A stretch of DNA of 64,000 nucleotides from Mobula birostris (taxonomy: Eukaryota), in the NCBI RefSeq assembly GCF_030028105.1, contig NC_092384.1, forward strand, positions 3,453,665 through 3,517,664, written 5' to 3'. Below are positions 6,672 through 64,000 of this stretch, in pieces (position 1 is the stretch's first letter; each line of letters begins with the position of its first letter). The notes under the pieces were generated by a model, which was given only the letters and a program-made list of their open reading frames with translations, made no database searches and had not been told where the DNA came from. The position numbers and the translations under genes are program-made.

Positions 6672-6838
6672 GTAGGATGAGCATAAAGCAAGTTCAACGA
6701 TGATGTCAAAGTGAATATATGACATCGACAAAAGTTTAACAAACCAATACACCACGTGTTCATGCCTCTTACGAATGCATATGCCGACGATTAAATTTAC
6801 ATTTGCTATATAGTAATTATTTTACTCAATACTTACAG

Positions 6839-6988
6839 ACAAGGAAATTGACAGCCAATAATAATCCAACATATGCCGTTTTGGAATTGGCGGATTCACA
6901 GAAGCCAAGAAAGTTTGAACGCAATGACGAAAGTTCGGAATATGCTAAGTTGGAAATCAGTCATCAACAACAAGTAAACAAGAAATGA
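6839..6988 (+). CDS. Terminal coding exon of an inhibitory receptor (TRKLTANNNPTYAVLELADSQKPRKFERNDESSEYAKLEISHQQQVNKK*)
   Basis: Acceptor tacttacag, phase 0, in frame with exon 6570-6671. Carries the ITIM-like motifs TYAVL and SEYAKL. Confidence 0.78.
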   Translation, partial: TRKLTANNNPTYAVLELADSQKPRKFERNDESSEYAKLEISHQQQVNKK

Positions 6989-20100: not shown

Positions 20101-21880
20101 AAGGGCTGATTAACCTGATGGCATGAACATTGACTTCTGTAACTTCTGCTAATGCCCCACTTCCCCTTCGTACCCCATCCCTTATTTATTTATTTATTTA
20201 TTTATTTATTTGGTTGGTTGGTGGATTATTTAGTTATATTTTTCCCATTTTTTCTCTCTTTTTTCTCCCTCTGTCCCTCTCACTATAACTCCTTGCCCAT
20301 CCTCTGGGCTCCACCCTCCCTTTCTCTCAATCTAGGCCTCCCGTCTACGACCTCTCCCTTCTCCAGCCTCATATCCCTTTTCCCAATCAACTTTCCAGCT
20401 CTTAGCTCCATCCCTCCCCCTCCTGTCTTCTCCTATCATTTCGGATCTCCCCTTTCCCCTCCCACTTTAAAATCTCTTACTAGCTCTTCTTTCAGTTAGT
20501 CCTAAAGAAGAGTCTTGGTCTGAAACGTCGACTGTACCTCTTTCTATAGATGCTGCCTGGCCTGCTGCGTTGCTTGGAATTCCAGCTTCTGCAGATCTCC
20601 TCGTGTGTAAGGATAGTCAGCATGGCTTTGTGCATGGTAGATCGTTTTTAATGAATCTTGTAGAGTTTTTCGAGGAGGTTACCAAGAAAGTAGACGAAGG
20701 CAAGGCTGTGGATGTTGTCTACATGGACTTTAGTAAGGCCTTTGATAAGGTTTCTCATGAGAGATTAGTTCAGAAGGTTCAGGCACTAGGTATCCATGGA
20801 GAGGTTGTAAACTGGATTCGAAATTGGCTGTGTGGGAGAAGACAGAGTGGTAGTGGATGATTGTCTATTAGATTGGAGGCCTGTGACTAGTGGTGTGCCT
20901 CAAGGATCTGTGCTGGGACCATTGTTGTTTGTTGTCTATATCAGTGATCTAGATAATAATGTGGTAAATTGGATCAGCAAGTTTGCTGATGACACTAAGA
21001 TTGGAGGCGTGGACAGCGAGGAAGACTTTCAAAGCTTGCAGAGGGATCTGGACCAATTGGAGGGGTGGGCCAGAAAGTGGAGAATAGAATTTAATGCTGA
21101 CAAGGGTGAGGTGTTGCATTTTGGAAGGACAAATCAAGGTAGGACATACACAGCAAATGGTAAGACACTGAGGAGTGCGGAGGAACAAAGACCTCTGGGA
21201 GTTCAGATGCATAATTCCCTGAAAGTGGCGTCACAGGTAGACAGAGTTGTAAAGAAGACTTCTGGCAGCCTGGCATTCATATATCAAAGTATTGAGTATA
21301 GGAGTTGAGATGTTATGGGGAGGTACTATAAGACATTGGTGAGGCCAAATTTGGAGTATTGTGTGCAGTTTTCGTCACCTAACTGTAGGAAGCATATCAT
21401 TACGATTGAAAGAGTGCAGAGATTTACTAGGATGTTGTGGGTCTTCAGGAGTTAAGTTACAGGGAACGATTGAACAGGTTAGGACTTTATTCCTAAGAGC
21501 GTAGAAGAATAAGGGGAGATTTGATAGAGGTTTACAAAATTATGAGGGTTATAGACAGAGTAAATGTGAATCAGCTCTTTCCACTTCGATTAGGACATGA
21601 CTGACTTTAGGGTGAAAGGGGAAAGGTTTAGGAGGAACATTAGGGGGAACTTCTTCACTCAGAGAGTGGTGGGAGTGTGGAACGAGCTGCCATCTGACAT
21701 GGTAAACGCGGGCTCACTCTGAAGTTTTAAGAATAAATTGGACAGGTACATGAATGGGAGAGGTCTGGAGGGTTATGGACTGGATGCGGGTCAATGGGAC
21801 CAGCGGCATAAACTTTCGGCACAGACTAAAAGGGCTGAACAGCCTGTTTTCCGTGCTGTAGTGCTATGGTTCTATTCTAT
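17140..21880 (+). mobile_element. Near full-length CR1 LINE (ORF1 zf/lz-esterase plus ORF2), decayed
   Basis: ORF1 SGNH-esterase remnants (MVCCLPAARICDISDRV, QPDVMVHVEINDM). APE at ~18520-19100. RT motifs [34 protein letters not shown]1 3' tail. Confidence 0.9.
20111..20590 (+). mobile_element. Penelope-like fragment inserted in CR1
   Basis: Starts with a PDGMNIDFCNF remnant, then pyrimidine-rich pseudo-LTR sequence. The CR1 RT sequence resumes on the far side. Confidence 0.65.
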
Positions 21881-38849: not shown

Positions 38850-40950
38850 AGACACTAGCACAATAGTAGATATTCCATGTGTCAGTGAGCATCAAGTGTG
38901 GGGAGTTACGATAACTAGAGAAATGGTTCCTGGGAAACTGGAAGGTCTGAATGTAGACAAGTCATCTAGACTAGATAATGTTCATCCCAGAGTTCTGAAA
39001 ATGATGGCTGAAGAAATCGTGGAAGCCTTAGTAATGATCGTCCAGGAATCCATTAGATTCTGGAATGTTTCCGGAAGACCGGAAACTTTCAAATGCCACT
39101 CCACTCTTCAAGAAGGGAGAGGGACACAAGAAAGGATGGTGTCAAGTTAGTCTCAACTCAGTGGTTGGGAGGATGTTGGAGTCGATTAGCAAGGATAAGT
39201 AACAAGGTACTTGAAGGCATATAATAAAGTAGGCCATAGACAACATCGTTTCGTCAAAGGAACATCTTGATGGACAAATCCATACATGAGCTGCATCTTC
39301 ATTCTTTCTTCAGCCACTTGGTGAATTTCACACGTATAAGATATTTTTCAGAAGTCTTTTTACAAATGGTCTAAAACTTCTGTAGCTACCGTTCCCAAAT
39401 TCTAGTAGTCAATCTTCCTCTCCCAATTACCAATTACTGTACGGAATAACTCTCCACATCATCGCCAGATCGTCAATTCCGTTGGCAGACTGCTGTGGCC
39501 TCATCACTAACGTCTCCAAACACATGCAGTTAGCGAGAGTTCACTTAAACACCTTGAGCAACTACGTGTGCGTGTAGTACAGACATCGGATTACCAACGC
39601 ATCAATGTCCCAGTGATTCCGGAAAACGGCGGCTCCCCGGGTAGAGGCAAGGGGCCTTCTACGAGCAATTTCTCCCAGGTCCCTCGTTCCAGCAACATAG
39701 CCCGTCTCAGTCTTTCGGTACTCCTCCACGCTCTGCCGGTTCTACACGCACAGGAGGCTCTCGTGGACCCGATTCTGTTTATGGAGTTTGGACCCTAAAG
39801 AACTTACCTCTCATACATATAGATTTACGTGGATAGGGGGTTTGCTGTTTGGCAGTAAACACAGAGTGGGAATAAAGGGATCCGATTCTGGTTGGCTGCC
39901 GGTTACCAGTGGTGTTCCACATGGGTCCGTGATGGGGCCGCTTCTTTTTACGTTGTACCTTAACGAATTGGATAATGTAATAGAAAGCTTTGTGGCTAAG
40001 TTTGCTGATGACACGAAGATAGGTCAAGGGGCAGGTAGTGCTGAGGAAACAGAGAATCTGCAGAGAGACGTGGATAGATTAGATGAATGGGAAAAGAAGT
40101 GGGAAATGAAATACAATGTTGGACAGTGTATGGTTCTACACTTTGGCAGAAGAAATAAAAGGACAGACTATTATTTAAATGGGGAGAAAATTCAAAGTTC
40201 TGATATGCAACGGGACTTGGGAGTCCTCGTGCAGGATACCCTTAATGTAAACCTCCGGGTTGAGTCGACGGTGAATAAGGTGAATGCAACGTTAGCATTC
40301 ATTTCTAGAGGAATAGAGTATAGGAGCAGGGATGTAATGTTGAGGATCTATAAGGCGCCTGTGAGACCTCAGTTGGAGTACTGTGGGCAGTTTCGGTCTC
40401 CTTATTTAAGAAAGGATGTGCTGATGTTGGAGACGGTACAGAGAAGATTCACTAGAATGATTCCAGGAATGAGAGGGTTAACATATGAGGAACGCTTGTC
40501 CACTCTTGGATTGTATTCCTTGGAGTTTAGAAGAATTGGGGAGGGGACTCACAGAAACATTTCGAATGTTGAAAGGCATGGACAGAGTGGATGTGGCAAA
40601 GTTGTTTCCCATGATGCGGCGGGGCGGGGTCTAGTACGAGAGGACATAACTTAAGGGTTGAAAGGCGCCCATTGAGAATAGAGATGCGAAGAAATTTGTT
40701 TTAGCCAGAGGGTGGTGAGTCTACGGAATTTGTTGCCACAGGCGGCAGCTGGAGGTCAAGTCCTTGGGTGTATTTAAAGACAGAGATTAATAGGTATCTG
40801 CGTAGCCAGGGCATCAAATGTGATGGTGAGAAGGCGGGGTTGTGGGACTGAATGGGAGAATGGATTAGCTAATGATAAAATGGGGAAGCAGACTCAATTG
40901 GCCAAATGGCTGACTTCTGCTCTTTTGTCTTATGGTTTTATTTTGTGTGT
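38850..40950 (+). mobile_element. Two CR1 fragments (38850-39270 degenerate; ~39800-40950 RT to 3' end)
   Basis: HPRVLKMMAEEIVEAL in the first. ORF 39788-40654 in the second has GVPHGSVMGP, FADDTKIG and RPQLEYCGQF. Confidence 0.8.
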
Positions 40951-50299: not shown

Positions 50300-53200
50300 T
50301 TATTTTAAATTTGCTAATGATACAACGATTGGAGGAGTAGTGGACAGTGAGGAAGGTTTTCAGAGCCTGCAGAGGGATTTGTACCAGCTGGAAAAATAGA
50401 CTGAAAAATGGCAGATGGAGTTTAATACAGACAAGTGTGAGGTATTGCACGTTGGAAGGACAATCAAAGGTAGAACATACAGGGTAAATGGTTAGGCACT
50501 GAGGAGTGCAGTAGGACAGAGGGGTCTGGGAATATAGTCACAAAATTCCCTAAAAGTGGTGTCACAGGTAGACAGGGTCGTAAAGAGATATTTTGGTACA
50601 TTGGCCTTTATAAATCAAACTATTGAGTATAAGACCTGCAATGTTATGGTGAGTTTGTATAAGGCATTGGTGAGGCTGAATTTGGAGTATTTGTACAGTT
50701 TTCGTCACCAAATTACAGGAAGGATATTAATAAGGTTGAAGGAATGCAGAGAAGGTTTACAAGGATGTTGCGGACTTGAGAAATTGAGTTACAGAGAAAG
50801 GTTGAATAGGTTAAAGATGGCGCCGGTAATTGGTAACTTTGCGCGTGCTCTCCGAGCAAACTGCACTCTCCACTATCCTATACCCGATAAACCCTTCTAT
50901 ACCAACAATTCAGCAAGATGAAGATCAACAACATCCTGGCGAAGCTGCTGACCCAGCTGGAGACCACCGCGAGAGAAATGCTTCTTTATCTCCGGACCAC
51001 ACCTGGACCCAACCACCGAGGCCCACCAAGTTCCCAAAGGCCCGCGGCCTGCTACTGTGCGGGAGTACTTGGAGACACGGCCCATTCCGACCAGCACCTT
51101 TCCGGAGCAGACGACCACACAGAAGTGAGGGCGGAAACCTCAAGGTGCCCCAAACGCTTCCCTGGAGCGGCCACCGTAAAGACCCGTTGCAGGCCATACA
51201 CAGTTGCCGGAAGTGAGGCTTCCGCTGCTGACCTCGGAAATCGAGCCCGAGGCTCGACTGAAGCGCAGGCCTCCGCAACTGCGACTCGGCTTGAGGACTT
51301 GCTTCAGCCAGGAGCCCGGCCCTGCGGGATTAAGTGTAGGATTCGGGGCCCGACCCAATCGACAGCCCGGGCCCCGGTCAGCTGGAAGTGGCAGCGGAGC
51401 CTCCCCCGTCACGCGGCCCGATGTGGCGTATCCGACGAAGCGACCCGCCGATCGATCCCCGTGGGACGCGTCCACAAACCTCAAAGAGCTGACAATAACA
51501 CACTGCATCGATGAACACCTGGAAAGATGCACTACTTACCGCGGAAGCGTGGGAAAAGAGCTGGAGGTCAGATTGAAGCTGAGGGGCTTCGGGGTCCCTA
51601 TGCCCACCATCCTACTAGCTAATTTGCAAGCCACAGAGAACAAGGTGGATGACCTTAAAGGGAAACTCACCTACTGCAGGGATATGCAGAACTGCTGTGT
51701 ATTCTGTTTCACCGAGACCTGGCTCTCCCCTGCCACCCCCAACTGTGCCATCCGGCTGGAGAGATTTTCGATCCATTGGATGGACCGCACGGTGTCTTCA
51801 GGCAAGACGAGGGGAGGTGGTGTCTACCTACTGATCAACACTGCGTGGCACTTGGACAGAGTGGCACTGACAAGCTCCTGCTACCTGGACCTGGAACTCC
51901 TGTCGGTGAAGTGTCATCCCTACTTTCTGCCACGGGAATTCACCTCAGTCATACTGTAAGCCGTTTACATTCCACCCCCCCAGGCGGACGTGGAGTGTGC
52001 TCTGAACATACTGTATGCCAACATCAGTGAACTTGAGACCAGGTATCCGGAGGCTTTGCTCATTACAGCAGGGGACTTTAAACAGGCCAACCTCAGAAAG
52101 GCTCTGCCAAAGTTATACCAACACGTCTCCTGCCCGACTAGCGGTCCGAATATACTTGACCACTGATACACAGCAGTCAAGGATGCCTGTTGTTCCATCC
52201 CACCACCTCACTTCAGAAAATGCCATCTCTCTGGCCCTACATTCCTCCTTAGAACACCTGGAGAATAAAGAGGCATACGTAAGACTCTTTTTCATTGACA
52301 ACAGCTCTGCCTTTAATACCATCATTCCAAATAAACTGATTCCTAAGCTCTGAAACCTGGGCCTTAGCAAACAGATCTGCAGCTGGATCTTCAACGTCCT
52401 CAGAGACAGGACCCAGGCTGTAAAAATAGGGGGAAGATCTCCTCTACAATCACTCTGAGCACTTGTGTCCCACAAGGCTGTGCACTCAGCCCCTGCTGTA
52501 CTCACTGTACACCCATAATTGTGTAGCTAAGTTTCCATCAAACTCAATGTATAAGTTTGCTGATGACACAACAATTGTAGGCCATATCTCGGGTAATAAT
52601 GGGTTTGAGGGCAGAGAGGAAATTAAGAACCTGGTGGCATGGCGTGGAAACAATAACCAATCGATTAACGTCAGCAAGACGAAGGAATTGGTTGTTAACT
52701 TCAGAAGGAGTAGCAGACCGCACAACCCAACTTACATCGGTGGTGCGCAAGTGGAACAGGTCAAAAGCTTTAAGTTCCTCGGGGTCAATATCACGAATGA
52801 GCTGACTTGGTCCAACCAAGCAGAGTTCACTGCCATGCAGGCCCACCAGTGCCCTTACTTCCTGAGAACTGTAAAGAAATTTGGCCTGTCCCCTAAAACC
52901 TTCACTAATTTTTATAGATGCACCATAGAAAGCATTCTTCTCGGGTGCATCACAACCTGGTATGGAAGTTGTCCTGTCCAAGGCCGGAAGAAGCTGCAGA
53001 AGATCGTGAAGACGGCGCAGGACATCACACAAACCAATCTTCCGTCCGTGGACTCACTTTACACCGCACGCTGTCGGAGCAGTGCTGCCAGGATAATCAA
53101 GGACACGACCCACCCAGCCAACACACTTTTCGTCCCTCTTCCCTCCGGGAGAAGGTTCAAAAGCTTGAAGACCCGTTCGGCCAGATTTCGGAACAGCTTC

Positions 53201-53935
53201 TTTCCAACTGTGATGAGACTGCTGGACGGATCCTGACCCGGATTTGGGTCGTACCCTCAAAATACCCGGACCTGCCTCTCGTTTTTTTTTTCACTACCTT
53301 ACTTCCCATTTTTCTATTTTCTATTTATGATTAATAATTTATTTTTTTATATTTACTAATTTTAACTATTTTCAATATTTTTAATATTTCACATTTTGTA
53401 ATCCAGGGAGTGTGAGGCGCAGAGTCAAATATCGCTGTGATGATTGTACGTTCTAGTACCAATTGTTTGGCGACAATAAATAATAAAGTATAAAGTGTAA
53501 AGGTTAGGACTTTGTTCCCTGGAGCGTAGAAGAATGAGGGGAGATTTGATAGAGGTATATAAAATTATGATCGGCACAGATAGCATGAATGCAAGCAGGC
53601 TTATTCCATCGATTCTAGGGGAGAAAAAAAAACAAAAAAAACAAAACAGAGTACATGGGTTAAGGGTGAAGGGGGAAAGGTTTAAAGGGAACATGGGGGC
53701 GGGGGGGGGCTTCTTCACACAGAGGGTGGTGGGAGTGTGGGATAAACTGCCAGATGAAGTGGTAAATGTGGACTCACCTTTAACATTTAAGAAAAATTTG
53801 GACAGGGACATTGGTGAGAGGCGTATGGAAGGATATGTTCCAGGTCAGGTCAGTGGGACCGCGCAGAAAAATGATTTGGCACAGACAAGAAGGGCGAAAA
53901 TGCCTGTTTCTGTGCTGTAATGTTCTATGGTTCTA
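50300..53935 (+). mobile_element. CR1 3' fragment split by a Rex1 insertion (50300-50813 and 53501-53935)
   Basis: The CR1 ORF2 C-terminus (LSYRERLNRL | GLCSLERRRMRGDLIEVYK) is continuous once the insert is removed. Confidence 0.85.
50814..53500 (+). mobile_element. Rex1/Babar LINE with intact-looking 5' end and an internal deletion
   Basis: TSD AGGTTA (50808-50813 and 53501-53506). Starts AAGATGGCGCC. APE (CVFCFTETWL, RGGGVYLLIN), RT (KFADDTTIVG) and a jump from EN to RT at ~52215. Confidence 0.88.
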
Positions 53936-58109: not shown

Positions 58110-59520
58110 AACATAGAACTTAGAATAATACAGCACAGTACAGGCCCTTCGGCCACTTTCCTCTGCCGACCTCAAACCCTAAGTCCCATATAACCCCCCA
58201 GCTTAAACTCCTCCATACACCTGTCTAGTAGTCGCTTAAACTTCACTAGTGTATCTGCCTCCACCACTGACTCAGGCAGTGGATTCCACTCACCAACTAC
58301 TCTTTGAGTAAAATGCCGTCCTCTACTATCACCCTTGCAATTCCCACCCCTCAACTTAAAACCAAGTCCACTTGTATTGAGCAGTGGTGCCCTGGGGAAC
58401 AGGCGCAGGCTATCCACACTATCTGTTAATTTAATATATTGTATACCTCTACCATGTCTCGTCTTATCCTCCTTCTCTCCAAAGAGTAAAACTCTAGCTC
58501 CCTTAATCTTTGATCATAATCCATACTCTCCAAACCAAGCAGCATTCTGGAAAATCTCCTCTGTACCCTTTCCAATGCTTCCACATCCCTCCTACAGTGA
58601 GTCGACCAGAACTGGACACAGTAGTCCAAGTGTGGCCTAACCAGAGTTTTATGGAGCTGCATCATTACCTCGCGACTCTTAAACGCTATCCATTGACATA
58701 TGAAAGCTAACATAAGCTTTCTTAACTACCCTATCTACCAGTGAGGCAACCTCCAGGAATCTGTGGACATGTACCCCCCGATCCCTCTGTTACTCCACAC
58801 TACCAACTATCCTGCCATTTACTTTGTACTCTGCCTTGGAGTTTGTCCTTCCAAAGTGTACCACCTCACACTTCTCCGGGTTGAAGTCCATCTGCCACTG
58901 CTCAGCCCAGTTCTGCATCCTATCAATGTCTCTCTGCAATCTTCGACAATCCTCTACACTATCTACAACACCACCAACCTTCGTATCGTCTGCAAACATG
59001 CCATCTCACCCTTCTACCCGATATCCAGGTCGTTAATAAAACCCACGAAAAGCACCGATCCTTGTGGGACACCACTGGTCCCAACCCTCCATTCTGAATG
59101 CAGTCCCTCCACCACGAGCCTCTGCCTTCTGCAGGCAAGCCAATTCAGAATCAACCTGGCCAAACTTCCCTGGAGTCCATGCATTCTGACTTTCTGATTA
59201 AGTCTACCGTGTGGAACCTTGTCAAATGCCTTACTAAAATCCATATAGATCACTTCCGCTGCACTACCCTCATCTATATGCTTGGTCACCTCTTCAAATA
59301 CCTCTATCAGGCTTGTTAGACACGATCTGCCCTTCACAAAGTCATGCTGTGTCCGTCATCAGACCATGATTCTCTAAATGCCCATAGATCATATCTCTAA
59401 GAGTCTCTTCCAACAGCTTTCCCACCACAGACGTAAGCCTCATTGGTCTATAATTAGCCGCCCTATACCTACTACCTTTTTTGAGCAAGGGGACAGCATT
59501 TGCCTCCCTCCCATCCTCCA
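58110..59520 (-). mobile_element. 5'-truncated CR1
   Basis: RT fragments (YMDFSKAFDKVPH, FADDTKVGG, RPHLDYCVQFWS). Confidence 0.88.
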
Positions 59521-60276
59521 ATTAGCCGTATGAATTACCGATAACTTATTGAGTATTCACTGAAATAGATTGCCTTAGGACAGGCAACACAGGATACAAC
59601 AACACAACAATCCAATATATAGATTCAACAGGGAACAGAATATATTGGGAGATTGCTACCGTCATATCATTAAACTAATATGGATATCTATTGTGAGTAT
59701 GCATGTAATGTTTTCTCAATTTATGCTTATTATGAGGACACTTTTGGATAGAACTCACCGAATGCGAAACATTTATTTAAAACCAACTTTCCTCTTCCGG
59801 TTTTCAACCTGACCAGCCTATGTTTCGTAAGACATTTCAAAATATCTCGGTTTAGCCTGTAGTGATCGTCAGTTATTTGCTCCATTCTAGCCTATCAGAT
59901 TAAAGTCGTAAATTAGATGCCCCGTGCTTATAGGTTTGAAGATAAAATGCCTGCCATTCCGTCAGAAATAAGAGTACTTATGCTGTTGAATGAAACCATG
60001 CTGTGGACTGCGTCTAATGAAGGCAATGGCACAGGGCCTCACGTTAGCAAAACAGCCAAGTTGCATTAATCGTATCACCAACTGTCTTTAAGGTGTATTT
60101 TTGCATCCTTAAACGTAGGATGAAAGACACTGAAGTCAATTGGTTTTATCTTCAAGCTACCATCACGCCACTCTCTTAAGATCAATCGCACTGCTGAAAA
60201 CACTTTAACCGTCATGCGTCGTAATGTTTCCGACGACTGTGTCAAAACTTCGAGTTTTGTCAGTTCTGTTTCAAAA

Positions 60277-60319
60277 ATGAATCTTTTCTTGTTAGTGATC
60301 TTCAATATTATTTATCCAG
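60277..60319 (+). CDS. Leader (signal peptide) exon MNLFLLVIFNIIYP
   Basis: ATG in an aaaaATG context, 14 mostly hydrophobic codons plus 1 nt, donor CCAG|gtaaag. Phase 1 matches the V exon. Confidence 0.72.
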
Positions 60320-60444
60320 GTAAAGTATACGTTTCCCTATCTCCCTTGTGGAAAAAAGTAAACAGTAAGTAATCCAGCGCTGGAAACTTAAAACCACTTT
60401 AATATTGTAGATGTTTGAAATATGTAGTTCATTGCCGATAACTT

Positions 60445-61790
60445 CATTAGCACATTTGGAAAGCAGTGAAATGATCGGATAAAGTCAGCATGGATTCGTG
60501 AAAGGAAAATCATGTCTGACGAATCTCATAGAATTTTTTGAGGATGTAACTAGTAGAGTGGATAGGGGAGAACCAGTGGATGTGGTATATTTGGATTTTC
60601 AGAAGGCTTTTGACAAGGTCCCACACAGGAGATTAGTGTGCAAACTTAAAGCACACGGTATTGGGGGTAAGGTATTAGTGTGGGTGGAGAGTTGGTTAGC
60701 AGACAGGAAGCAAAGAGTGGGAATAAACGGGACCTTTTCAGAATGGCAGGCGGTGAATGGTGGGGTACCGCAAGGCTCAGTGCTGGGACCCCAGTTGTTT
60801 ACAATATATATTAATGACTTGGATGAGGGAATTAAAGGCAGCATCTCCAAGTTTGCGGATGACACGAAGCTGGGTGGCAGTGTTAGCTGTGAGGAGGATG
60901 CTAAGAGGATACAGAGTGACTTGGATAGGTTGGGTGAGTGGGCAAATTCATGGCAGATGCAATTTAATGTGGATAAATGTGAAGTTATCCACTTTGGTGG
61001 CAAAAATAGGAAAACAGATTATTATCTGAATGGTGGCCGATTAGGAAAAGGGGAGGTGCAACGAGACCTGGGTGTCATTATACACCAGTCATTGAAAGTG
61101 GGCATGCAAGTACAGCAGGCGGTGAAAAAGGCGAATGGTATGCTGGCATTTATAGCGAGAGGATTCGAGTACAGGAGCAGGGAGGTACTACTGCAGTTGT
61201 ACAAGGCCTTGGTGAGACCACACCTGGAGTATTGTGTGCAGTTTTGGTCCCCTAATCTGAGGAAAGACATCCTTGCCGTAGAGGGAGTACAAAGAAGGTT
61301 CACCAGATTGATTCCTGGGATGGCAGGACTTTCATATGAAGAAAGACTGGATGAACTGGTCTTGTACTCGTTGGAATTTAGAAGATTGAGGGGGGATCTG
61401 ATTGAAACGTATAAAATCCTAAAGGGATTGGATAGGCTAGATGCAGGAAGATTGCTCCCGATGTTGGGGAAGTCCAGAACGAGGGGTCAAAGTTTGAGGA
61501 TAGAGGGGAAGCCTTTTAGGACCGAGATTGGGAAAAACTTCTTCACACAGAGAGTGGTGAATCTGTGGAATTCTCTGCCACAGGAAACAGTTGAGGCCAG
61601 TTCATTGGCTATATTTAAGAGGGAGTTAGATATGGCCCTTGTGGCTACGGGGGTCAGGGGATATGGAGGGAAGGCTGGGGCGGGGTTCTGAGTTGGATGA
61701 TCAGCCATGATCATAATGAACGGCAGTGCAGGCTCGAAGGGCCGAATGGCCTACTCCTGCACCTATTTTCTATGTTTCTATGTTTCTAAG
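60445..61790 (+). mobile_element. Young 5'-truncated CR1 in intron 1, with an uninterrupted 397-aa RT reading frame
   Basis: ORF 60498-61691 has no stops and all CR1 RT motifs; (ctatgttt)n tail. Confidence 0.95.
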
Positions 61791-61959
61791 TAGGTGTTGT
61801 GGCTGTTAGCACGTGGTAACTGGTAAAATAAATTAATATTATGATGTGCAAAAAAATAAAAGTTGTATTCTCACGTATCTATGCTTGAAGATGAAATTGT
61901 TCATTCACATACTGTGTATCTACGGCTATATGTATTAATTTCCATTCTTTACCACACAG

Positions 61960-62280
61960 CCGTGACAGAAGTACGGAACAAGGTTTTGCAATTCCCTGTC
62001 AGGACAAACGTGATCATTGGTGGAAGCGTCACTTTCTACTGTGCTTTCCCACTCCTCCAAGATAACTCAGATCTAAATGTTGTCTGGTGGAAACTAGGGG
62101 GAAACAATTTTCTGCAGACTTGGCTGGACAGCAGGAAATATGTCCCTACTTTAAGTAACGGGGAGGCTTCTTTTCAGCTCATAAACGTCAGTGCCGCAGG
62201 CACGGGAGTATATTATTTTGGGGTGAAACGTCGAGATCATTCAATAATAAATGGAACTGGGTCAAAACTCGTGGTCCATG
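61960..62280 (+). CDS. VJ-type Ig V-set domain exon of a SIRP-like/antigen-receptor-like IgSF gene
   Basis: Acceptor ccattctttaccacacag and donor G|gtaagc. 321 nt, phase 1-1, open. Motifs VLQFP, GGSVTFYC, VVWW, ASFQLINV, GVYYF and the J-like GTGSKLVV. Confidence 0.9.
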
Positions 62281-62434
62281 GTAAGCAGAAATTATTAAAA
62301 TTTATACCAAAATAAAGTAAAGAAAGTTCACTTCGAGTTCTCTTATAATAACAACCTAAATTTTATGCAAAAAAAATCTGGTTTCTATTCCCACATAAGT
62401 TGTCTGTCTTCTTAGTGTTTCCAGATTTTATTTT

Positions 62435-62850
62435 TTTCTATTCCCTGGAGCGTAGAAGAATGAGGGGAGATTTGATGGAGGTATATAAATTTATGATGGG
62501 TATAGATAAAGTGAATGCAAGCAGGCCTTTTCCACTGAGGCAAGGGGAGAAAAAAAAAAACAGAGGACATGGGTTAAGGGTAAGGGGGGAAACGTGTAAA
62601 GGGAACATGGGGGCGGTTCTTCACACAGAGAGTGGTGGGTGTATGGAATGAGCTGCCAGACGAGGTGGTAAATGAGTTTTTTTTTAACATTTAAGAATAA
62701 ATTGTACAGATACATGGATGAGAAGTGTATAGAGGAATATGGTCCGTGTGCAGGTCAGTGGCACAAGGCAGAAAATGGTTCGGCACAGCCAAGAAGGGCC
62801 AAACGGCCTGTTTCTGTGCTGTAGCTTTTTCTATGGTTTTTCTATGGTTT
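62435..62850 (+). mobile_element. CR1 3' fragment in intron 2
   Basis: LERRRMRGDLMEVYK and a CR1 3' UTR/tail. Confidence 0.85.
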
Positions 62851-63897
62851 ATTGTTTCACTCTGCTGTGTTTTTGATCTGAGAGTTGGAAGCTGAATTGT
62901 AAATTCAAAATTGCTACAAATACAATATAGGGTGCGCTATGGCTTCATTTAGGGACATGACTGAAAATTTTTCGCATTCAAATTTGTTTCTGAATCGAAT
63001 CATGAATATTTTTGTCATTCAAATTTAATCTCACTTTTTTGATACTTAGTCTATGGAATAATGGTGGTGTAATAAGATCATGAAAATGACTTTCACCAAA
63101 CCTTTAACAGAAATTCCAAAGAAACACAGTCAAAAGATGATTCGATGTTCTTGGTTAGTAAGAGAGCAGTGTGACCGACAGTTCGATGCTTGTATTTTGT
63201 TATACCAACTGAAGTAATTAATGCTGAGTAATCTTTTTTTTCGCAACTCACAGTAGATGTTGGATTCAAATGACGACAATTTCGGCTGCATTCAAGTGCT
63301 TCAAAATCTACGACTTTCTTATTTACCGGGCATCGTTTAGATTTTCCTTCTTAATATTATAGTTTTCCTCCTGAAACATATCTGCAGCACCTTAAAAAAT
63401 AACTCCCAATCTCCCAAATACCTTTAGCTGTGTGATGAGAATTGCATTTTTCTAATGGCATCAAATATTGTATCTAAACGGATTCTGCCACGGTCATTTC
63501 CAACATTTACTTCATTACTTAAACCTGCCATTTGGCAATCCAAGCCTTCCTCTTGAAAATGCTACAGCTTCTTTGATGTAACCTTGCAGCATCAGAACCA
63601 CCAACTCTCTTAAGTTTGTGATCCCGCCTATAGGTACCATTATTATCTATGTGAGCATTTCAGGGCATTGAAATTAAAATGAAATAATGTCATTAATTTA
63701 TAATTTTCTCACCACCTATAGAAAACAATGTTTATGTCCTGTGCAGATATTAAACAGACAGTCCAGTAATGTTATTGATGTCACAGTCGATGAAATGTAT
63801 ACAATGTCAATTTGCTTTTACCGAAGAAAGATTTAAATTATTCTGCAATTTTGGATAAAAATATCTGTTATGAATAAATATTTAACTTGTTCTGCAG

Positions 63898-64000
63898 TTC
63901 CACCGACCCCATTACGAATTACTTACAATGAAACCAATCATAATGGATCTATCTCCCTTAAAATTGTATGCAAAACTCCTGAATTCTACCCTGATGAGAT
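63898..64000 (+). CDS. Start of an Ig C1-set exon (VPPTPLRITYNETNHNGSISLKIVCKTPEFYPDE...), runs off the window
   Basis: Acceptor tttaacttgttctgcag. Phase 1 joins the V exon G to TT = Val. Open to the window end, with the C1 signature C-x4-F-Y-P. Not in the ORF track because it lacks a start codon. Confidence 0.88.

Follow-up and report, generated by a model that had tools for sequence, protein, structure and literature searches.

Positions 60277–64000 (+ strand) of a 64,000-nucleotide stretch of Mobula birostris DNA, the whole of which we call the window, carry the 5′ part of a gene with the architecture of an antigen receptor: a leader, a V-set domain that includes its own J-like strand, and the start of a C1-set domain. 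The 3′ part of the gene lies beyond the window end. We found that this gene is a non-rearranging V(J)–C1 member of a large chondrichthyan family of V(J)–C1–transmembrane (TM) receptors, and that its V domain has lost two residues that its closest relative, in Mobula hypostoma, retains.

Three exons encode a germline-joined V(J)–C1 receptor

Exon 1 (60277–60319, +) encodes a hydrophobic leader of 14 codons plus one base, and ends at a phase 1 donor (CCAG/GTAAAG). Exon 2 (61960–62280, +), which is phase 1 at both ends (acceptor ..cacag/CC, donor CATG/GTAAGC), encodes the V-set domain including the J-like G strand, N-G-T-G-S-K-L-V-V with its G-x-G motif (62250–62276, +). Exon 3 (63898–64000, +; acceptor ..ctgcag/TT) begins the C1-set domain with the linker V-P-P-T-P-L and the motif C-K-T-P-E-F-Y-P; it is open to the last base of the window, and its translation is visible over 34 codons only. 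Intron 1 (60320–61959, +) consists mostly of a long interspersed nuclear element (LINE) reverse-transcriptase fragment, and intron 2 (62281–63897, +) carries a high-copy repeat. A sequence-only reading of this DNA had proposed that three phase-compatible exons splice into a single peptide, with a J-like G-x-G strand inside the V exon and no recombination signal sequence (RSS) beside it. Direct reading and translation reproduced that peptide exactly, with canonical splice sites and phase 1 for both introns. The reading was also correct about the J-like strand, which is followed by a His codon and then directly by the GT donor; the CACAGTG heptamer, of which a search found 10 copies in the whole window, is absent from 60000–64000, and we saw no sign of a recombination signal.

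The closest relatives of the gene product are the predicted M. hypostoma protein XP_062923424.1 (P0001; 287 amino acids, annotated as ‘tyrosine-protein phosphatase non-receptor type substrate 1-like’) and isoform X2 of a Hemitrygon akajei protein (P0109). In both of these orthologous proteins the leader–V and V–C1 junctions fall at identical residues, so the splice pattern is supported independently of RNA. Upstream of the leader ATG the frame is open over 60148–60276 (+), and automated models of relatives start within this 5′ leader region, at the in-frame ATG that opens 60214–60276 (+). Translated searches (tblastn) aligned 60148–60321 with residues 1–36 of P0001 and residues 1–59 of P0109 at 75–81% identity. 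Public models that start at upstream ATGs thereby gain an N-terminal extension that is not a signal; the hydrophobic stretch that looks like a signal peptide begins only with the ATG at 60277.

The gene belongs to a large chondrichthyan receptor family

An exhaustive phmmer search with the 106-residue V domain matched 94 proteins, the best of them P0001 (E = 9e-55, 86% identity). A profile built from 25 full-length members found 76 proteins, 64 of which are chondrichthyan family members. The V–C1 matches whose source species were looked up came from sharks, rays and a chimaera: Heterodontus, Carcharodon, Heptranchias, Mustelus, Scyliorhinus, Hemiscyllium, Chiloscyllium, Hemitrygon, Hypanus, Pristis, M. 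birostris itself and Callorhinchus. Against the family V profile the window V domain scored 125.8 bits (E = 6e-39), with its nearest relatives at 133–135 bits; this score and the phmmer match to the M. hypostoma protein led us to reject a chance open reading frame (ORF). The first 33 residues of C1 scored 34.7 bits against the family C1 profile, and 26 of the 33 are shared with P0001.

Members of the family follow a common plan. A leader is followed by a V domain with W-W-K and D-x-G-V-Y-Y-C motifs that ends in a G-[TS]-G-[ST]-x-L-x-V strand, a V-P-P-T-P-L linker, one C1-set domain (C-x-T-x-x-F-Y-P ... Y-T-C-x-V-S-H) and a TM segment; the cytoplasmic tails are short or carry tyrosines of the L-T-Y-A-A-L and T-E-Y-A-x-[LV] types, which resemble immunoreceptor tyrosine-based inhibitory and switch motifs (ITIM/ITSM). 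A single C1 domain precedes the TM segment in P0001 and 24 aligned relatives. P0001 and P0109 both have a TM segment and a cytoplasmic tail, P0001 being a short-tailed member, and a confident AlphaFold model of the P0001 ectodomain (predicted local distance difference test score, 88) shows two β-sandwich domains. The visible part of the window gene matches this plan in the J-like strand (G-T-G-S-K-L-V-V for G-x-G-[ST]-x-L-x-V) at the end of a V exon without an RSS, and in a C1 domain directly after V, with the P-P-T-P-L linker and the C-x-T-x-x-F-Y-P motif. It fails to match in the V disulfide pair and the Asp of D-x-G-x-Y-x-C, a failure that marks a defective or aberrant member and not a different family. 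The family layout is that of innate receptors that come in inhibitory and activating pairs; for the window gene, whose TM segment and tail lie outside the window, the same design would be expected by analogy with its relatives.

Family members carry at least eight automatic names in databases, among them SIRP-like, tapasin-related-like, NCR3 ligand 1-like (B7-H6-like), Ig lambda-1-like and CD276 homolog. Orthology should not be read into such automated names (SIRP, tapasin-related, B7-H6, Ig lambda, CD276, MHC class II beta). The literature that we searched contained no paper naming or describing a chondrichthyan V(J)–C1–TM family or a shark SIRP-like family, in agreement with the earlier description of the family as poorly characterised. 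Word-indexed protein searches, run with the V region and the C1 region of P0001, found no protein other than P0001 itself and P0109, and no named distant relatives.

The V domain has lost its second cysteine and a conserved aspartate

To place the V domain residue by residue, we aligned 122 family V domains (the window and 121 others) to the family profile. At the Asp position of D-x-G-x-Y-x-C the window has a Gly codon, GGC (62199–62201, +), where 118 of the 121 other domains have Asp and three have Glu; at the second canonical Cys it has a Phe codon, TTT (62217–62219, +), where all 121 others have Cys. It is thus the sole one of the 122 domains to lack the second Cys, and the sole one in which the Asp position is not acidic, reading A-A-G-T-G against A-A-D-T-G and V-Y-Y-F-G against V-Y-Y-C-G in its relatives. 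The replacement of Y-Y-C by Y-Y-F had been overlooked by the sequence-only reading. The intradomain disulfide, to which the second Cys contributes, and an Arg–Asp salt bridge are the hallmark stabilizers of V-set domains. The window V domain scored only 20.9 bits against the Pfam V-set model, under the cut-off of 26, because this Cys and Asp are lost.

Sequencing reads from several samples bear on the origin of these changes. A contig from the source run is identical to the window over 61766–62466, and a contig from a second, very close sample (organism B) that spans 62070–62238, and so covers both altered codons, shows no differences from it. This agreement indicates that the Cys and Asp changes are not assembly errors. 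At 62218 the source and organism B contigs have T; in organism C, a relative that is approximately 5% divergent, two contigs have G there, giving TGT (Cys); the Cys-to-Phe change is therefore derived in the window lineage. The Asp-to-Gly change is derived too, since P0001 and P0109 retain the Asp, as does the remainder of the family. Over 62201–62376, organism C (run X9) yielded two different contigs, approximately 5% and 12% divergent from the window, which may mean that this species has another, related copy or that one of its alleles is very divergent.

Accelerated change suggests relaxed constraint on this copy

In a tree of 121 V domains, the window V domain was sister to P0001 (Shimodaira–Hasegawa-like approximate likelihood-ratio test (SH-aLRT) support, 88), with P0109 next (100). 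This is the order expected when a stingray serves as outgroup to a gene of mantas or devil rays. The window copy is probably the ortholog, or a very recent duplicate, of P0001. The three genes are alike in leader, V(J) domain, C1 start and exon junctions, but P0001 and P0109 keep the Cys and Asp where the window has Phe and Gly.

We next compared rates of change between the two Mobula sequences. A relative-rate (Tajima) test on V with Hemitrygon as the outgroup assigned 13 changes to the window branch and 2 to the M. hypostoma branch (chi-square = 8.07, P = 0.0045; binomial P = 0.007), a rate approximately 6-fold that of the sister. The end branches of the V tree differed approximately 10-fold (0.12 for the window, 0.011 for P0001). 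Ten of the 13 changes fall in framework strands, with strands A, A′, C, D, E and F all hit, and three fall in the loop that resembles complementarity-determining region 3 (CDR3). One change replaces the aromatic residue before W-W, a position that is aromatic in 20 of 23 other aligned members. The 33 residues of the C1 start showed no such asymmetry (2 versus 1 changes).

These results show that one copy from a chondrichthyan multigene family, whose members are non-rearranging type I membrane receptors, begins in the window, which takes in its leader, its V(J) domain and the start of its C1 domain. In the window lineage the V domain no longer has the conserved Asp or the second Cys of its intradomain disulfide and has gained 13 amino-acid changes, most likely under relaxed constraint. 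As one member of a birth-and-death family the copy may be drifting towards loss of function, or may already have reached it, while its frame and splice sites are still intact. We infer relaxed constraint or loss of function with a probability of roughly 55%, a little better than even.

Several observations weigh against decay. The 155 visible codons contain no stops and no frameshifts, all four splice sites are canonical, and the V domain scores nearly as high against the family profile as its relatives do. The altered state is common to two samples, which shows that the gene has lasted in this form. Fast change would also be the outcome if positive selection acted on an immune receptor, and the window copy could be a paralog of P0001 instead of its ortholog. 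Most of these points are what would be seen if the gene encoded a functional receptor, with a V domain that works without the canonical disulfide and salt bridge and a burst of substitutions that was adaptive, in response to a new ligand or to pathogen pressure. Adaptive bursts of this kind are common in paired immune receptors, and the three changes in the CDR3-like loop would fit one, but the other ten lie in the framework and include the core aromatic before the W-W motif. A receptor of this kind would also have dispensed with a Cys that every one of the 121 other V domains keeps and with an acidic residue, Asp or Glu, present in all of them, and protein region searches found no annotated protein for this gene beyond those of M. 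hypostoma and H. akajei. We therefore regard continued function as possible, though less probable than decay.

The family appears about equally distant from SIRP and immunoglobulin chains

Considering that the sequence-only reading had assigned the gene to a chondrichthyan SIRP-like family, we examined how the family relates to other V–C1 proteins. In a domain-score comparison that rests on few reference sequences, the family V profile gave 21.5 and 17.6 bits for SIRP domain 1 and 20.3 bits for Ig kappa V, and the family C1 profile gave 48.8 bits for Ig kappa C, 45.7 for SIRP domain 3, 37.1 for SIRP domain 2 and 28.5 for the T-cell receptor (TCR) beta C domain. BLASTP with the P0001 ectodomain likewise returned SIRP (50.8 bits, 27% identity) and an Ig kappa-like chain (47.0 bits, 25% identity) at similar scores. 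The assignment thus holds for a chondrichthyan-wide, non-rearranging V(J)–C1 family, whereas ‘SIRP-like’ appears to describe its layout only, as the per-domain scores are about as high for Ig kappa. On these comparisons we conclude that the family appears to form a V(J)–C1 lineage of its own, with SIRP and Ig chains at about the same distance from it.

Like the family, SIRP-alpha, -beta and -gamma do not rearrange, have C1-set domains behind a V domain that includes a J-like G-x-G strand, and occur in inhibitory and activating versions. A true chondrichthyan ortholog lineage of mammalian SIRP would also account for the best non-chondrichthyan match of the family profile, a camel SIRP-like protein (122 bits summed over three domains), and for the best template modelling score (TM-score) in a fold search, 0.77, which belonged to SIRP-beta and SIRP-alpha. 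The closest V domains outside cartilaginous fish, in multi-V(J) proteins of turtles and a frog (40–58 bits), provide a further, weak transitive link: the best single-domain solved match of the frog V(J) domain is SIRP-alpha domain 1. Nevertheless, we consider such orthology unlikely, because SIRP has two C1 domains where the family has one, SIRP is, in the few reference sequences compared, domain by domain no closer to the family than Ig kappa is, and B7-H6, PD-L1 and CD276 score equally well or better by fold.

Structural comparisons pointed in several directions. The fold matches, at 17–24% identity, included PD-L1, CD276, B7-H6, SIRP, CADM, butyrophilins and Ig lambda, with no clear winner. 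Among solved chains, the best immune-receptor fold was B7-H6 (4zso_E; Z = 16.7, 24% identity), with UrIg2 at Z = 14.1 and SIRP-gamma at Z = 13.5. Single-domain and V-profile searches of PDB sequences were dominated by antibodies and multi-Ig chains and did not discriminate between the candidate families. B7-H6 (NCR3LG1) shares with the family a V domain and C1-like domains with a similar F-Y-P strand, but the G-x-G J motif is not a known feature of the B7 family.

Germline-joined Ig light-chain (IgL) genes exist in sharks, some family members are automatically named ‘immunoglobulin lambda-1 light chain-like’, and the C1 profile gave its highest score in the above comparison to Ig kappa C. We nonetheless consider it very improbable that the window gene is an ordinary germline-joined IgL or TCR gene of a cartilaginous fish. 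The P0001 ectodomain is 25% identical to the Ig kappa-like light chain as against 40–86% within the family, Ig kappa V reached only approximately 20 bits with the V profile, and 60000–64000 contains no RSS heptamer. P0001 and its relatives have a TM segment and a cytoplasmic tail, many with ITIM-like tyrosines. In the V tree, the one Ig kappa-like V domain fell outside the fork that holds all family members, with a modest SH-aLRT support of 85 in a tree without shark IgL.

Two other proteins with VJ-type domains were rejected. NKp30 (NCR3) has a single VJ-type V domain (PMC10751288) and no C domain, and the C1 exon that follows V in phase in the window separates the two, as the sequence-only reading had argued. 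UrIg and UrIg2, non-rearranging antigen-receptor genes of elasmobranchs, have a VJ exon followed by several C domains (PMC12227049), whereas the relatives of the window gene have a single C1 and then a TM segment. UrIg and UrIg2 are like the family in their germline VJ exon followed by a C1-set domain, in not rearranging and in their presence in cartilaginous fish, and UrIg2 (9dmx) was among both the C1 sequence matches and the fold matches. UrIg2 differs in its V-C1-C2-C3 organization and antibody-like dimers, as opposed to V–C1–TM with signalling tails, and the sequences are distant.

SIRP has been discussed as a link to antigen-receptor evolution (PMC2785349), and VJ–C1 precursors are treated in PMC10751288. 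The near-equal distance of the family to SIRP and to Ig kappa fits the idea that it is a surviving side branch of the non-rearranging VJ–C1 receptor ancestral to SIRP and to the rearranging Ig and TCR chains. We offer this idea tentatively and think it improbable. If it were true, the window copy would be a natural experiment, in which a manta V(J) domain has gone without its disulfide and its salt bridge and has nevertheless kept an open frame in two samples or more.

Taken as a whole, the family bears on the form of antigen receptors before RAG, and on how the oldest jawed vertebrates acquired paired receptors of the inhibitory and activating kinds. This locus adds little to either question, and the sequence-only reading overstated its importance: many copies are annotated besides this one, the window end truncates it, its V domain lacks an invariant Cys and a conserved Asp and has changed approximately six times as fast as its sister, and it is probably decaying. 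We regard it as an aberrant, probably decaying member of a family already predicted in databases. Its modest value lies in being an example of birth-and-death turnover, in which two hallmark V residues kept in the sister species are lost, and a concrete case for weighing relaxed against positive selection.

Surrounding features of the window

Elsewhere the window contains fragments of transposons and a single stray tail exon that belongs to this receptor family; a second copy of the family (a paralog) was sought within the window and not found. The tail exon is a lone terminal coding exon (6839–6988, +; AG acceptor at 6837–6838) that encodes a cytoplasmic tail and then a stop. This tail carries the ITIM/ITSM-like motifs N-P-T-Y-A-V-L and S-S-E-Y-A-K-L, and is 51% identical to the tail of a Heptranchias family member (P0005). 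No V, C1 or TM exon near it was found in the window. As it lies upstream of the V–C1 gene on the same strand, it cannot belong to that gene; either it is a relic, or it is the final exon of an upstream gene, set far apart from the others.

Both introns of the V–C1 gene contain sense-oriented retroelement pieces (60408–61826 and 62343–62858) that end in short tandem tails (ttctatgt.. and ttttctatgg..). Within the first lies the LINE reverse-transcriptase fragment, an ORF of 397 amino acids (60498–61691, +; Pfam RVT_1, E = 1.3e-22) that is not part of the gene product and is extremely high-copy in all four sequencing runs compared. The second includes the high-copy repeat, the 3′ part of a LINE or short interspersed nuclear element (62440–62855, +), with a depth of 1e5–1e6 in all runs. 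With summed contig depths of 1e5–2e6 in the runs of all three organisms, these intronic repeats are among the most abundant in these genomes. Pfam identified further RVT_1 ORFs at 39788–40654 and 52463–53236. Reverse-transcriptase fragments at 60699–61145, 58859–58996, 20973–21266 and 39992–40129 match residues 51–187 of a Heterodontus francisci database protein (P0002; XP_067905015.1, ‘tapasin-related protein-like’), a model that seems to join a transposon-derived N terminus to a V–C1 body of the receptor family.

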